A stretch of DNA of 64,000 nt from positions 206,182 to 270,181 of IMG/VR virus record IMGVR_UViG_3300024503_000015; one strand, written 5' to 3'. The position numbers and the translations under genes were made by a program. Positions 34,323 through 41,286 of the stretch are shown here, in pieces. Under the pieces are notes generated by a model, which ran no database searches, had not been told where the DNA came from, and was given only the letters and a program-made list of their open reading frames with translations. Position 1 is the first letter of the stretch. Each line of letters starts with the position of its first letter.

Positions 34323-34558
34323 TTATTAGTAAGATGTCCCGAGAGTTTTGGTTTGGGTAAGGCCATCCGACGGTGCGATTCGTCCCTCTCTTTGTCTAGC
34401 CCAACATGAAGTTCTTGTAGTCTCAATCCGCTCACCTTGCACCGGCGCTTGATACATATACTCTACAGCATTAAAGTTTATAACTTCAATTAACAAAAAC
34501 TTCCGATCTTTGTTAACTCCTTGCGGATGCTTTTAGAACCTTAACTACTTACTAATAA
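34323..34558 (-). ncRNA. Stem-enclosed structured RNA
   Basis: 11-bp terminal IR TTATTAGTAAG/CTTACTAATAA; internal hairpins. Confidence 0.5.
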
Positions 34559-34560
34559 AA

Positions 34561-34829
34561 GGGGTGGAGAGAGAAAGGCAAGTAATAGACTGGACAATGT
34601 ACAAGCGGGCTCTATAAAGATACCCTTAACAAGTCACAAGGCGCAAAGCACAGGGACCTGTATATTTCCAGTTAGCAACTCACAAAGTCGATTAATATAT
34701 AGAACTGGTTCACACAAGCACGAAACGTTTTCAAGACGTTTTGCCAGTAGTTGATGTTCGGTCTCTATAAGAGATCAAACCTTAGGCATGTAGCCTAAGT
34801 CTGTCTATCCTAATCTCCTTCTCTACTCC
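34561..34829 (-). ncRNA. Stem-enclosed RNA with repeated YUUGU motifs
   Basis: Terminal GGAGTAGAGA.../...TCTCCACCCC stem; about 8 (C/U/A)UUG(U/C) repeats. Confidence 0.5.
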
Positions 34830-34858
34830 AGGCTCGGGCTTTCGCCTTTGCCAAAACT

Positions 34859-34932
34859 TGGTTGCGGGACCTGGAATCGAACCAGGATCTAGAGCTTATG
34901 AGACTCTTGAGTTACCGTTTCTCTATCCCGCG
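34859..34932 (-). tRNA. tRNA-Met(CAT), initiator-like
   Basis: C1:A72 mismatch (CGCGGG...CCCGCAACCA), but lacks the three G-C anticodon-stem pairs. Confidence 0.85.
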
Positions 34933-34935
34933 ATA

Positions 34936-35072
34936 ACTTTATAGGTGCTCTCTGTTCGACTCGAACGAAACCTGCTGAGCTCCTTATCTTCCTGGCACTT
35001 TCGGTGGGTAGTCGACTTAGCACCTAACTCGTGTTATCCAGTGTAGTTCAGCTCAGAGAGCATTTATAAAGT
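34936..35072 (-). ncRNA. Long-stem RNA with T-loop-like hairpin
   Basis: About 19-bp terminal stem ACTTTATAAATGCTCTCTG/CAGAGAGCACCTATAAAGT; GTTCGAGTC loop. Confidence 0.55.
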
Positions 35073-35268
35073 GTCTAGCCACTCCCACCACAGGAGCCCT
35101 AAACCGAGCTGTTACTCTGTCCACTAGCCTTTCCATTTAGACGGTGCTGAGGTCCGCCTTTGTGATTTCTCAAGTCGCTTTAAACAAGCCTTGCGGTAGA
35201 TCCAATGCACCGAGCCATTAAGGTGTAGCAATTACCTAACTCTATCACGCTGAGTTAACGCGGGGTCT
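35073..35268 (-). ncRNA. Putative structured RNA
   Basis: Non-coding and GC-richer than the genome; several hairpins including CCGCAAGG. Confidence 0.45.
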
Positions 35269-35269
35269 G

Positions 35270-35842
35270 TTACAGTAAACCTTCTGCTTGCAGAACTGCT
35301 TCTGTTTTGTCAGACAATTGGATAGTTGTCTGAACATTTAACTCTAGGATTTCATCCTGAAGTTTTTGTTTCTGCTTTTTAGCAGTTGCCACTCTACGAC
35401 GGAATCCGTCTAGATCTTCACGAGTGAGCACACTAGTGTCTACTGTGTCGTTGTAGCCATAGATGCTACGACGGTTTTCGCTTTTGTCGTTACGGATCTT
35501 GTCCAAACGACCTGCTACAACCTTTGCGCTTTCGCGAACGGTCTTACTAGCCAATCCGTTGTAGAATTGGATTTGTTTTTCTAGATGTGCAACATCGGCC
35601 AATCTAGTGTCGATTCTAACTTCTGTGTTAGCACCGCTGACACTTTTACGAATCTCGTAAAGTGCTTCCACTAACGCATCTCTGCGTGTAAGGTTGTCGC
35701 AGAGTGTTCCTGCAACTTTGGAAATTTCTTGTTCCGCTTCTTGGAACTCGTTGATTTTTACTGTGGTCTCAAACTGGAAACCTTTGACGGTATCGTTGAT
35801 ACTGTTCTGAAGTGCATTTGCCTTACGTAGGGAGATATTCAT
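35270..35842 (-). CDS. Coiled-coil hypothetical protein
   Basis: Start MNISLRKANAL after AAGGA; helical. Confidence 0.75.
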   Translation of the reverse strand: MNISLRKANALQNSINDTVKGFQFETTVKINEFQEAEQEISKVAGTLCDNLTRRDALVEALYEIRKSVSGANTEVRIDTRLADVAHLEKQIQFYNGLASKTVRESAKVVAGRLDKIRNDKSENRRSIYGYNDTVDTSVLTREDLDGFRRRVATAKKQKQKLQDEILELNVQTTIQLSDKTEAVLQAEGLL

Positions 35843-35908
35843 TTGTTTTTCCTTTAATGTTTCTATTATACAATCTTTTAAATCTAAATCAATGCCTTTT
35901 GGCAAAAC

Positions 35909-35984
35909 TGGAGCGGGAGACGAGGTTCGAACTCGCGACATTTACCTTGGCAAGGTAATGCTCTACCAACTGAGCTACTCCCGC
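35909..35984 (-). tRNA. tRNA-Gly(GCC)
   Basis: Canonical cloverleaf; CCA. Confidence 0.95.
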
Positions 35985-36032
35985 ATATGAAGAACCTAAG
36001 GCAAAGTTTATAACTTATCCAAAGGCCATATA

Positions 36033-36108
36033 TGGTACACGGTACGGGAATCGAACCCGTCTTACTGACGTGAAAGGCCAGTGTCCTAAACCGATAGACG
36101 AACCGTGC
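36033..36108 (-). tRNA. tRNA-Glu(TTC)
   Basis: Canonical cloverleaf; CCA. Confidence 0.95.
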
Positions 36109-36114
36109 ATTACT

Positions 36115-36190
36115 TGGCTCCCCAGGGTGGGATCGAACCACCGACACCCTGATTAACAGTCAGGTGCTACTACCGCTGAGCTACTAGGGA
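36115..36190 (-). tRNA. tRNA-Asn(GTT)
   Basis: Canonical cloverleaf; CCA. Confidence 0.95.
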
Positions 36191-36197
36191 ATAAACT

Positions 36198-36272
36198 TGG
36201 TACCTGGTGACAGTTTCGAACTGCCGACCCTCTCGGTGTAAACGAGACGCTCTACCACTGAGCTAACCAGGC
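36198..36272 (-). tRNA. tRNA-Val(TAC)
   Basis: Canonical cloverleaf; CCA. Confidence 0.95.
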
Positions 36273-36282
36273 AAACTAACAT

Positions 36283-36359
36283 TGGTCGGAGTACAAGGAT
36301 TCGAACCTTGGACCCTCTGGTCCCAAACCAGATGCGCTACCAGACTGCGCTACACTCCG
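36283..36359 (-). tRNA. tRNA-Pro(TGG)
   Basis: Canonical cloverleaf; CCA. Confidence 0.95.
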
Positions 36360-36364
36360 AATGA

Positions 36365-36440
36365 TGGAGCGGGAGGCGAGAGTTGAACTCGTCTATTTCA
36401 GTTTGGAAGACTGACGTGTAACCACAAACACTTCACCCGC
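36365..36440 (-). tRNA. tRNA-Gly(TCC)
   Basis: TCAGT-CT TCC AA-ACTGA; CCA. Confidence 0.9.
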
Positions 36441-36446
36441 ATATTT

Positions 36447-36530
36447 TGGTGCCCCAGGAGAGACTCGAACTCTCACGGCTCTCGCCACTGGCTTCTAAGA
36501 CCAGCGTGTCTACCATTCCACCACCAGGGC
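36447..36530 (-). tRNA. tRNA-Leu(TAG)
   Basis: Long variable arm; CCA. Confidence 0.95.
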
Positions 36531-36531
36531 A

Positions 36532-40117: not shown

Positions 40118-40120
40118 ATT

Positions 40121-40195
40121 TGGTGGAGGCCGAGGAAATCGAATCCTTCTAGACATCTTCCTTGCAAGGGAAGACCGTAGCCCACTACTGCCCCC
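40121..40195 (-). tRNA. tRNA-Ala(TGC), atypical D arm
   Basis: G3:U70; CTTCC-CT TGC AA-GGAAG. Confidence 0.75.
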
Positions 40196-40280
40196 AAATT
40201 GGTGTTAGTTTCTATACCACCCATTGAAACTAACAAACATTGAGAGAACATGGATGAACCCACAAGATCTCTATTTGCTC

Positions 40281-40355
40281 TGGTATAGCGTACGGGGATC
40301 GAACCCGCCTAGTCACCTTGAAAGGGTGATGACCTCCCCAGAAGTCGAACGCTAT
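40281..40355 (-). tRNA. tRNA-Glu(TTC), second copy
   Basis: TCACC-CT TTC AA-GGTGA. Confidence 0.85.
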
Positions 40356-40361
40356 GTAAAT

Positions 40362-40435
40362 TGGTTCCTGGACCGAGAATTGAACTCAGAATGACCGGTT
40401 ATCAGCCGATTGTTATACCATTTAACTATCCAGGA
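40362..40435 (-). tRNA. tRNA-Ile(GAT)
   Basis: ATCGG-CT GAT AA-CCGGT. Confidence 0.9.
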
Positions 40436-40442
40436 ATAATAC

Positions 40443-40520
40443 TATACAAAAAGAAACTAACGACAATGCGCTATGCACCCAGAGTCTATAGTTCCTGGCT
40501 GTGGTTAGTTTGTTTTTATA
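40443..40520 (-). ncRNA. Stem-enclosed small RNA
   Basis: TATAAAAACAAACTAAC/GTTAGTTTCTTTTTGTA. Confidence 0.45.
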
Positions 40521-40523
40521 CAC

Positions 40524-40622
40524 TACCATATGGAAGCACTCTTATGCCTTTTTCGTCATAAGATGGTGGCCCGTCCTTACTACTGACGCTATGCGACCAG
40601 TTAAGAATGCTTTCATATGGTA
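40524..40622 (-). ncRNA. Stem-enclosed small RNA
   Basis: TACCATATGAAAGCATTCTTA/TAAGAGTGCTTCCATATGGTA; overlaps the tRNA-Lys CCA. Confidence 0.5.
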
Positions 40623-40692
40623 GGGGCACAGAGAATCGAACTCTGATTTACGGGTTAAAAGCCCGCTACTTTAACCATTAAGTTATACCCCC
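40618..40692 (-). tRNA. tRNA-Lys(TTT)
   Basis: GCGGG-CT TTT AA-CCCGT. Confidence 0.9.
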
Positions 40693-40695
40693 ATA

Positions 40696-40771
40696 TGGTC
40701 CCTGCTGTGAGATTCGAACTCACACCTCATTGATTAAGAGTCAAGTGCGCTACCATTGACGCTAAACAGGG
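40696..40771 (-). tRNA. tRNA-Lys(CTT)
   Basis: TTGA-CT CTT AA-TCAA. Confidence 0.9.
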
Positions 40772-40833
40772 TTGTACGTATTGATTTGATTTTACGTGCC
40801 AACCCTAGACCATACGGGAGATCTAGAGTGACA

Positions 40834-40854
40834 CTAACGTTTAGCACGTTTCAT
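40834..40854 (-). CDS. Minigene MKRAKR-TAG
   Basis: SD AAGGAG 6 nt upstream; stop followed by a long hairpin. Confidence 0.45.
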   Translation of the reverse strand: MKRAKR

Positions 40855-40866
40855 GCTACTCTCCTT

Positions 40867-40929
40867 TTAATATTTTTTCAAAACTTGATACAACACGAAC
40901 ATTATAACTAACACTACAAGTACTGCCAT
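40867..40929 (-). CDS. 20-aa single-TM peptide
   Basis: SD AAGGAG; MAVLVVLVIMFVLYQVLKKY. Confidence 0.5.
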   Translation of the reverse strand: MAVLVVLVIMFVLYQVLKKY

Positions 40930-40942
40930 AATATTCTCCTTA

Positions 40943-41032
40943 TGGTCCCCCGTTGAGGAATCGAACCTCATCCTGGACCTTATCTAGATTAATCGGTTAT
41001 AAGCCGACCTGCTCTCCATGAGCTAACGGGGG
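40943..41032 (-). tRNA. tRNA-Ile(TAT) with long variable region
   Basis: GTCGG-CT TAT AA-CCGAT; about 20-nt extra arm. Confidence 0.8.
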
Positions 41033-41040
41033 ATATAACC

Positions 41041-41118
41041 TGGAGCAACGGGTCAGATTTGAACTGACGGTTTTACGGATTTGCAATCCGTTGCATTGGG
41101 CCTCTCTGCCACCGTTGC
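41041..41118 (-). tRNA. tRNA-Cys(GCA)
   Basis: U73; anticodon GCA. Confidence 0.9.
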
Positions 41119-41123
41119 ATTAT

Positions 41124-41198
41124 TGGCGTACCCCCAGGGACTCGAACCCCGACTAGCAGTTTTGGAGACTGTCGTGCTGCCATTAACACTAGGGATAC
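41124..41198 (-). tRNA. tRNA-Trp(CCA)
   Basis: CAGT-CT CCA AA-ACTG. Confidence 0.9.
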
Positions 41199-41218
41199 AT
41201 AACACTCTCTTTCGAAAG

Positions 41219-41286
41219 TGTGTATTAAAGCATACTACTCATCGGCTACTGCCATTTGATTGTTCGGCAGTATGCTTTAATACGCT
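41219..41286 (-). ncRNA. Stem-enclosed small RNA
   Basis: GCGTATTAAAGCATACT/AGTATGCTTTAATACAC. Confidence 0.5.

Follow-up and report, generated by a model that had tools for sequence, protein, structure and literature searches.

Nine stem-closed spacers in a phage tRNA array

Nine non-coding spacers, here E1 to E9, lie among the transfer RNA (tRNA) genes of a river jumbo phage and are closed by long inverted repeats. The window, i.e., the whole stretch of 64,000 nucleotides (nt) analysed, is the final 64 kb of the 270-kb IMG/VR contig IMGVR_UViG_3300024503_000015, which has a completeness of 71%. ARAGORN predicts 31 tRNA genes within 33542-41198, on the minus strand throughout, and the minus strand is also the RNA strand of all nine spacers, of a GOLLD RNA and of a transfer-messenger RNA (tmRNA); every feature discussed below lies on it. 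The initial annotation of this DNA gave plus-strand coordinates but quoted the 5' arms as they read on the minus (RNA) strand. It described nine spacers closed by inverted repeats, and terminal inverted repeats are present at each of these nine intervals. In an Rfam 15 scan of 33400-41700 (E<=5), the spacers are unmatched, and the only matches are to tRNA, to GOLLD and, at chance level, to models overlapping tRNAs; besides GOLLD and its internal tRNA-Lys(CUU), Rfam finds one additional weak tRNA in the array.

For comparison, about 40 related loci (given by L-numbers) were retrieved from IMG/VR with two open reading frames (ORFs) of the array, of 223 and 267 amino acids (aa), at 41-100% protein identity; all of them contain tRNA arrays, in shuffled order. 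Read in the direction of the RNA, the first spacer is the cassette E9 (41219-41286), whose helix of 15-19 pairs (15 bp perfect between the arms 41269-41283 and 41222-41236) encloses a cargo of about 30 nt. The E9 cargo is also found in L023 and L012, with altered arms and the pairing kept, and the E9 slot together with its arm is filled by other cargos in L008, L044, L009 and L012. In the cassette E8 (40524-40622; helix of 22-24 bp with an A.C mismatch), the 5' arm begins at the ACCA of tRNA-Lys(UUU) (40621-40618); its cargo homologue in L012 has a different helix that still pairs. The cassette E7 (40443-40520) has a helix of 17-26 pairs (17 bp with a C.C mismatch) and is followed 7 nt on by tRNA-Ile(GAU); its homologue in L008 holds the same cargo in an E8-type helix, which carries the E8 outer arm and is attached straight to tRNA-Lys. 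E6 (40203-40235) is a plain 13-bp hairpin without cargo, its arm resembling the inner arm of E7.

E5 (39658-39870) is a 213-nt structured RNA with two T-arm-like hairpins and a closing helix of its own (9-10 bp), and 90 IMG/VR stretches share an exact 18-mer with its core. E4 (38402-38570; 169 nt) is closed by a 19-20 bp helix with G.U pairs, and its 5' arm begins at the ACCA of tRNA-Tyr (38570-38567), so that E4 and E8 are the two stems for which such a start had been annotated; the tRNA-Tyr slot is occupied in L008, L013 and L012 by other cassettes, beginning ACCATTAG. The cassette E3 (37432-37511; inverted repeat of 18-21, forming a helix of 19-20 bp with an A.C mismatch) lies directly 3' of GOLLD and 5 nt ahead of tRNA-Asp. 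The cassette E2 (34936-35072), with a 19-nt helix (89% paired) containing two A.C mismatches, follows a conserved block, X2, and precedes tRNA-Met by 3 nt; in L012, the slot after X2 holds an E9-type cargo. E1 (34323-34558; 236 nt), closed by a perfect helix of 11 bp, also ends 3 nt ahead of a tRNA-Met, and in L023 its closing helix differs yet pairs. By nhmmer, homologues are found at five loci each for E1 and E5, at three for E2 (L007, L008 and L010), at two each for E3 and E9 and at one each for E7 and E8, and E4 has no sequence homologue in the related loci.

On the RNA strand, the fold z-scores are -6.2 for E3, -5.9 for E4, -3.9 for E6, -3.8 for E7, -5.4 for E8 and -6.4 for E9, and about -1.7 to -2.2 for E1, E2 and E5 as single sequences. 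Folding is better on the minus strand for eight of the nine elements; E2 prefers the plus strand because its two A.C mismatches turn into G.U there. A first stem scan (G.U allowed, two mismatches, at least 13 pairs) was too permissive, with about 650 matches per strand, and higher thresholds or motif-anchored sets were used instead. Across the whole 270-kb contig, the 7-kb array accounts for four of about 11 stems with at least 20 pairs, and the shared arm motif described below is confined to it. We also considered intrinsic terminators and rejected them: the stems consist mainly of A-U pairs (G-C fraction 0.24), what comes after them is a tRNA or a further cassette, and in a terminator scan no closing helix matched, the sole match within a spacer being a short internal hairpin of E4.

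Between E4 and E3 lies a full-length GOLLD RNA (37495-38401; about 900 nt), which the initial annotation missed. It matches Rfam RF02032 with 207.2 bits at 37517-37980 (gathering threshold 150), bears a tRNA-Lys(CUU) in its linker (37844-37917) and is homologous over about 900 nt in more than 15 loci. In every related locus that contains the GOLLD 3' end, a cassette follows it immediately, and in a second clade another cassette also stands ahead of GOLLD. A permuted tmRNA is called at 52086-52488 by ARAGORN and at 52177-52458 by Rfam (RF04321, 138.4 bits; gathering threshold 47). Its intervening segment (52334-52399) had been said to have a stem similar to those of the spacers, and indeed a stem of 13 bp including three G.U pairs (-26.7 kcal/mol, z -4.8) begins right after the ACCA, with a 3' arm resembling the cassette 3' arm. 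Between the arms of this closing stem lie two copies of an 18-nt direct repeat (52341-52392).

By GOLLD and the 223-aa protein, the nearest cultured relatives are Caulobacter phages (the phiCbK-like Magneto group and CcrPW). The GOLLD locus of Magneto, the one cultured locus compared, is GC-rich, its GOLLD ends in a terminator and it has no AU-rich cassette, so that no model system was found among cultured phages. In Magneto (L046, 5198-6512), the permuted tmRNA adjoins GOLLD with its linker tRNA-Lys; GOLLD, tRNA-Lys and a two-piece tmRNA co-occur in the window as well, where they are about 14 kb apart.

Selection on pairing, the shared handle and its cargos

Judged by comparison among related arrays, the closing helices are kept paired at the RNA level by selection. 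In the E3 helix, compared in three phages, both sides have changed in 10 of the 19 pairs, a value reached by 0 of 500 shuffles, and 87.7% of the helix cells are paired, against 26-49% for slid partners. The E5 closing helix is 98.2% paired in 57 distinct sequences, with both-side changes in 9 of 11 pairs; slid partners give 24-54%, no shuffle reaches the observed value, and the remainder of E5 covaries in 21 of 48 predicted pairs. The counts for E3 and E5 were made in fixed alignments, an outside-in comparison of stems having been dropped because register shifts inflate compensatory counts. Compensatory changes, on which the initial annotation let its proposal depend, are counted in these two elements; in E1, E7, E8 and E9 they are seen by eye. 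In addition, the tRNA-sense strand has 155 G.U against 103 A.C oppositions (81 without the conserved site) when both strands are treated alike.

The initial annotation had noted that several 5' arms look alike, and this likeness extends to a consensus across many phages. The consensus, or handle, is an AU-rich helix of about 21 bp, 5' (ACC)AUAUAAAAACACAUU ... AGUGUGUUUCUAUAU(GGU) 3'. In relatives, the arm pair 5' (ACC)ATATAAAAACACATT and 3' AGTGTGTTTCTATAT(GGT) recurs with an A.C mismatch at a fixed place, and a second clade has the arms ...TTAGATGAAYAC / GTGTTCTTCTAA... with a U.U mismatch. Variants of the handle close E2, E3, E7, E8 and E9 in the window, and looser ones close E4 and the tmRNA intervening segment; the closing helix of E5 is not of this type. 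The stems of E3, E4, E7 and E8 comprise 20-24 pairs. In 51 cassettes from the loci retrieved with the two ORFs, helix length varies from 17 to 27 bp with a median of 21 bp, and the G-C fraction is 0.24; 47 of them contain a mismatch, clustered at 40-50% of the helix length and usually A.C (21), U.U (13) or C.A (10). That the mid-helix A opposite C serves as an editing site is speculation; no T>C difference is seen at 37504 or 40614 in metatranscriptome contigs, which cannot show partial editing.

At least 120 IMG/VR stretches carry the 17-nt 3' arm without any change, and 80 loci from among them provide the figures that follow on spread, orientation and exact-arm cassettes. A complementary arm lies 40-320 nt upstream of 89 of 90 exact-arm matches. 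At least three tRNAs are present in 77 of the 80 loci (median 16.5 per locus of about 9.5 kb) and the 223-aa protein or GOLLD in only 3-5, which makes the handle a general trait of large phage tRNA arrays and not of one lineage. Taking the asymmetric arm as reference, 1354 tRNAs run in its direction and 10 run against it.

A host-derived processing signal was considered and set aside: a 16-mer of the arm has 92 occurrences in 596 Gb of bacterial and archaeal genomes, of which only six are canonical cassettes, each lying on a short contig binned into a metagenome-assembled genome (MAG) from freshwater. These six contigs (L167, L179, L188, L202, L204 and L219; 1.5-4.9 kb) are assigned to unrelated phyla, i.e., Planktophila, Polynucleobacter, Bacteroidetes, Planctomycetia and Geobacteraceae, and are most likely mis-binned phage DNA. 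Searches of 50,697 cultured phage records by megablast and blastn return tRNA matches only for the array and none for E5.

The position of the handle relative to tRNAs is recurrent. Sixty-two of 88 exact-arm cassettes begin at the ACCA of a predicted tRNA, which is tRNA-Lys(UUU) for 49, and 43 of 88 are followed at -4 to +12 nt by a tRNA, mostly tRNA-Met(CAU), the first GGU of which pairs with the ACC of the upstream tRNA. In another set of cassettes, 13 of 49 start at a tRNA CCA and 19 of 52 end near a tRNA 5' end. The frequency of tRNA-Lys(UUU) would be expected if the pairing controlled tRNA maturation, i.e., if the helix set the order or rate of processing for tRNA-Lys(UUU) and the next tRNA while the loop was a free-drifting spacer; the hypervariable cargo, and the background depth of the small cassettes in RNA runs (see below), would agree with this. 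However, the cargo cores of E3, E7, E8 and E9 are better conserved than their helices, as seen between phages that share no more than about 70-75% identity in the neighbouring protein; members of several cargo groups are found on more than one contig, and the cargos fold as hairpins, some with T-arm-like motifs. Control of maturation as the sole role of the helix is, in our estimate, improbable.

The cargos measure 30-130 nt and fold into hairpins, T-arm-like in about 10 cargos and in E5. A comparison of cargo content across related phages, as the initial annotation had suggested, sorts a first set of 54 cassettes into about 45 groups by cargo, and 81 unique exact-arm cassettes into 66 groups that cannot be aligned with one another behind one exact arm; some groups recur across different contigs. 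At the syntenic slot between tRNA-Lys(UUU) and tRNA-Met(CAU), compared in 15 loci, the flanking tRNAs are 75% and 78% identical and the cargos 0.51, against 0.50 for shuffled cargo. Different cargos also stand behind one arm at one slot elsewhere, e.g., at the head of the array after the leader X9. A function of the cargos as antisense regulators of phage genes was rejected, the longest complementary words (11-13 nt) being not above shuffled controls. With compensatory helices, differing cargos in near-identical helices at one slot, and strict co-orientation with tRNAs, the cassette architecture that the initial annotation had proposed is itself strongly supported.

Swapping of cargo at a syntenic slot, with arms and flanking tRNAs kept, is also what one would expect of an element acting on DNA, the repeats bounding small cassettes that move non-autonomously or recombine, with the ends of tRNA genes as their targets, much like miniature inverted-repeat transposable elements (MITE), repetitive extragenic palindromes (REP) or attC sites, and RNA structure being incidental. 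E8, present in the window, is missing at the L008 junction where E7 carries the E8 outer arm, and it is the arm sequence, not the pairing alone, that is conserved. Such an origin is nonetheless quite unlikely as the whole explanation: the arms covary while the cargo is kept, which is unexpected for transposase-bound ends; G.U pairs are in excess on the transcribed strand; orientation to the tRNAs is one-way (1354 versus 10); the 71%-complete contig has no Y1 transposase or reverse transcriptase; and the cargo cores are conserved and structured. The same orientation, and the lack of a Y1_Tnp match on the contig, led us to discard MITE, REP and elements of the IS200/IS605 type; retron non-coding RNAs (ncRNAs) share the presence of inverted repeats and were discarded for want of an RVT_1 match on the contig. 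A DNA-level process partly coexists with the RNA models, in that recombination in the handle may shuffle cargos; the cargos are probably exchanged between phages by recombination in the handle and the flanking tRNA genes.

RNA abundance and proposed release from the array

The array had been proposed to form a single tRNA polycistron, which does not hold. A sigma-70-like promoter with 11 of 12 matches lies inside it at 38843-38871, and further sites of this type are found at 38704-38732, 35865-35892, 33741-33769 and 33512-33540; with at least five such promoter-like sites, the array is better described as several transcription units. It is present in 24 riverine metatranscriptome runs from 24 studies, four of which were used over 35450-41449. 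The runs are assembled contigs, and depth is contig depth summed per bin. By far the most abundant stretch in the four runs is GOLLD (37450-38449), with depths of 430 to 3.4e4 (430-2,040 in the 3'-most bin and 3,700-33,600 in the remainder). The bin of E5 (39650-39849) has depths of 337, 15, 2073 and 2882, the three high values standing against 5-30 in the flanking bins. GOLLD and E5 exceed their flanks 10-1000-fold. The bins of tRNAs (7-75) are at background, which indicates that the libraries under-sample small RNAs, and the 267-aa ORF has a depth of 1-8. Of the roughly 10 small RNAs initially proposed, accumulation is thus seen for E5 (and for GOLLD, which had not been named), and the others stand as proposals from sequence. 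In the RNA runs, loose ends are seen within GOLLD at 37842 and at 37915, together with a single joint passing over 72 nt, which point to co-occurring variants with another linker tRNA or with none.

In the reading that we propose, each spacer is a structured RNA module in its own right, made from the minus strand in the same transcripts as the phage tRNAs, and the handle, at its base, adjoins or takes in the ACCA of the tRNA before it and the first bases of the tRNA after it. The precursor would fold as tRNA, cargo-bearing handle and tRNA. A host double-strand nuclease of the RNase III type would then cleave near the central mismatch, leaving on the upstream tRNA a short 3' trailer for exonucleases to trim to CCA, and on the downstream tRNA a short 5' leader for RNase P to take off; the small RNA would be freed, capped by the inner half of the handle. 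A paired CCA end presumably cannot be aminoacylated, so the duplex would have to be cut or opened, and the conservation of the cargo makes removal merely by degradation appear unlikely. Processing of the RNase III type is plausible from the sequence features, i.e., the helix of about two turns (the median of 21 bp agrees with the length of about 20 bp or more for substrates of this enzyme), the central mismatch and the sequestered CCA ends. For the reading as a whole, in which the spacers are RNA modules with selected closing helices, a subclass of them sharing the handle, released by an RNase III-type cut and carrying exchanged cargos, we estimate a probability of about 0.4.

Several observations weigh against this reading. 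The consensus helix has one wobble and one mismatch whichever strand is read, so that the consensus alone cannot tell which strand matters. The bin of E4 (38450-38649) has a depth of 2-170, not above background, as do those of E7/E8 (6-20) and E9 (1-36); since E4, at 169 nt, is in the same predicted transcription unit as GOLLD, its failure to accumulate argues against every cassette yielding a stable RNA. The metatranscriptome contigs show no RNA starts or ends, and contig ends were not taken as such because unitig breaks also come from strain variants. Genes for RNase III, double-stranded RNA-binding domain (dsRBD) proteins, RtcB, Rsr and other candidate nucleases were not found on the 71%-complete contig, and a host enzyme must therefore be assumed. 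Finally, the handle is weak in its outer half, where A-U pairs lead up to the mismatch, and this half could open when the tRNAs fold, letting RNase E and RNase P act without a double-strand cut.

This last point leads to the main rival route, in which the tRNA that follows is cut at its 5' end by RNase P, the tRNA that precedes is separated just past its CCA by RNase E or exonucleases, and the closing helix merely insulates folding and shields the freed spacer RNA from exonucleases. The cassettes whose end meets a tRNA 5' end or lies no more than 12 nt from it (19/52 and 43/88) and those that start at a tRNA CCA (13/49 and 62/88) are placed as this route would predict, the mismatch sets off a weak outer segment of 8 bp in the handle, and E5 accumulates despite its non-consensus closing helix. 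In accordance with such a cut, E. coli RNase E cleaves directly after the CCA of proline tRNAs trailed by a stem-loop (PMC5291269). Left unexplained, however, are the conservation of a helix of about 18 bp across unrelated cargos in more than 100 phage contigs and the constant mismatch at mid-helix; moreover, the five tandem cassettes of L034, which have no flanking tRNAs, would have no RNase P site between them. We consider release by RNase P and RNase E, with the helix as a mere clamp, rather unlikely.

The handle may also be part of something wider, in which it is a universal signal for processing or protein binding and phages with large arrays express and swap many small RNAs that act on the host. 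Here the cargos would serve, e.g., as decoys or mimics against tRNA-targeting defences; the preferred anchor of the handle is tRNA-Lys(UUU), a classic target of anticodon nucleases. A phage-wide system of this kind is unlikely, and a role of the cargos in host manipulation or anti-defence is a guess.

The array holds further features. The conserved non-coding leader X9 (41287-41398; nhmmer matches in L009, L012, L023, L008 and L044) lies immediately upstream of the first cassette and, in the alignment, invariably leads into a 5' arm of the GCGTATTAAAGC type. X1 (34559-34858), a conserved non-coding block of about 300 nt, has nhmmer matches in nine loci and is supported by the alignment; it shows invariant motifs, is unmatched in Rfam and could be a further large structured RNA, and it lies outside the stretch used for RNA depth. 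X2 (35073-35269), a conserved structured non-coding block right after the stop codon of the 223-aa ORF, is likewise matched by nhmmer in nine loci; it shows apparent compensatory changes and in the nine related loci is always followed by a cassette or an AU-rich arm. X9, X1 and X2 were all overlooked in the initial annotation. A consensus-like inverted repeat at 37203-37337 has its 5' arm over the start codon of the 267-aa ORF (36532-37335) and its partner arm 100 nt inside that ORF, which has no Pfam or PHROG match and may have been inserted into a cassette or have arisen from one.

Two other array proteins, of 151 aa (33766-34221; weak match to the malonyl-CoA decarboxylase C-terminal domain) and 223 aa (35270-35941; helical by eye), are conserved across the phage lineage and rare in other cassette arrays (3-4 of 80 loci). 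The ORFs of the array read normally with code 11; a tRNA at 46322-46395 with anticodon CUA (labelled Pyl by ARAGORN) would read the amber codon. At 39958-40200, likewise overlooked at first, stand three tandem sub-threshold tRNA-like genes, Ala(UGC)-like, Gly(GCC)-like without encoded CCA, and Pro(UGG), none of which default ARAGORN calls and one of which (39958-40030) passes Rfam with 31.6 bits; they may be degenerate or non-canonical tRNAs. Another tRNA-like gene (33627-33735) has a sigma-70-like promoter to itself (33769-33741) and, close to the anticodon stem, about 22 inserted nt; it is kept in five loci and is called by ARAGORN only in intron mode with a lowered threshold. The spacer 40772-40942, partly conserved among seven related arrays, contains a hydrophobic micro-ORF of 20 codons with a ribosome-binding site, followed by an ORF of six codons.

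Relation to known systems

GOLLD and ROOL are large structured ncRNAs found among phage tRNA genes, and the GOLLD linker sometimes includes a tRNA (10.1101/2024.12.08.627333). The spacers share with them the embedding in a phage tRNA array, and the window has a true, highly expressed GOLLD; unlike them, the cassettes are small, unrelated by Rfam and closed by a common helix, and no shared handle was found in the GOLLD/ROOL literature searched. The architecture is undescribed in the literature searched on GOLLD/ROOL, on tRNA arrays and islands and on structured phage RNAs, and a survey of 10,006 candidate structured viral RNAs mentions tRNA-like candidates and not the handle-cassette arrangement.

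By genomic context alone, the spacers can be likened to 'species 1' and 'species 2' of phage T4, small stable RNAs that lie inside its tRNA cluster and are co-transcribed and processed with the tRNAs, species 1 RNA being cleaved in vitro by E. coli RNase III. These are two RNAs, for which we know of no shared handle or cargo swapping. The stems of rRNA operons and of phage T7, long helices flanking a functional RNA or intergenic hairpins, are cut by host RNase III; transcripts of rRNA operons interleave tRNAs, and the T7 sites have an internal distortion at the cut. In the cassettes, by contrast, the helix sequence is conserved across unrelated cargos and includes the tRNA CCA, and cleavage is only proposed.

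Hairpin RNAs linked to tRNAs are known as the tRNA-microRNA transcripts of murine gammaherpesvirus 68, as plant tRNA-small nucleolar RNA genes and as synthetic tRNA-guide RNA arrays. There, too, a hairpin or small RNA directly follows a tRNA and is freed by tRNA-processing enzymes; these systems are eukaryotic or artificial, use RNase Z on tRNAs without encoded CCA and have no conserved closing helix. The intervening segment of a permuted tmRNA sits between an ACCA end and the 5' strand of the acceptor stem and is removed in maturation, here with a handle-like stem; it differs in being a single locus, with flanks from one tRNA-like domain and an excised piece that has no known function. The bacterial Y RNA-like RNA YrlA resembles the spacers in combining a long terminal stem with a tRNA-like module, T-arm-like hairpins being present in some cargos and in E5. 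A Y RNA identity was rejected: the only Rfam match to YrlA overlaps true tRNAs (24.8 bits against a threshold of 69), and no TROVE domain, as in Rsr, is found on the 71%-complete 270-kb contig, nor is a gene for RtcB, so that RtcB-based circularisation was rejected too. To our knowledge, none of the GOLLD/ROOL, T4, rRNA/T7 and tRNA-linked hairpin systems combines a conserved handle with interchangeable cargo.

A phage tRNA array is commonly taken for a list of tRNAs, interrupted now and then by a large RNA such as GOLLD or ROOL; in the present one, the spacers themselves form a conserved modular class of RNA. The shared helix with interchangeable cargos is found in more than 100 uncultivated phage contigs and is essentially absent from bacterial genomes, and E5 is among the most abundant phage RNAs of river metatranscriptomes. 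GOLLD itself is placed in a context, in that a cassette always follows it in the related loci, which offers an entry point to the role of GOLLD-type RNAs and of arrays beyond tRNA supply. If the handle is a signal for processing or loading, it would provide a simple rule for finding many new phage small RNAs and a natural counterpart to the synthetic tRNA-spacer guide RNA arrays. In sum, ncRNAs embedded in phage tRNA arrays are already known, and there is a fair chance that the cassettes described here form a distinct system among them.

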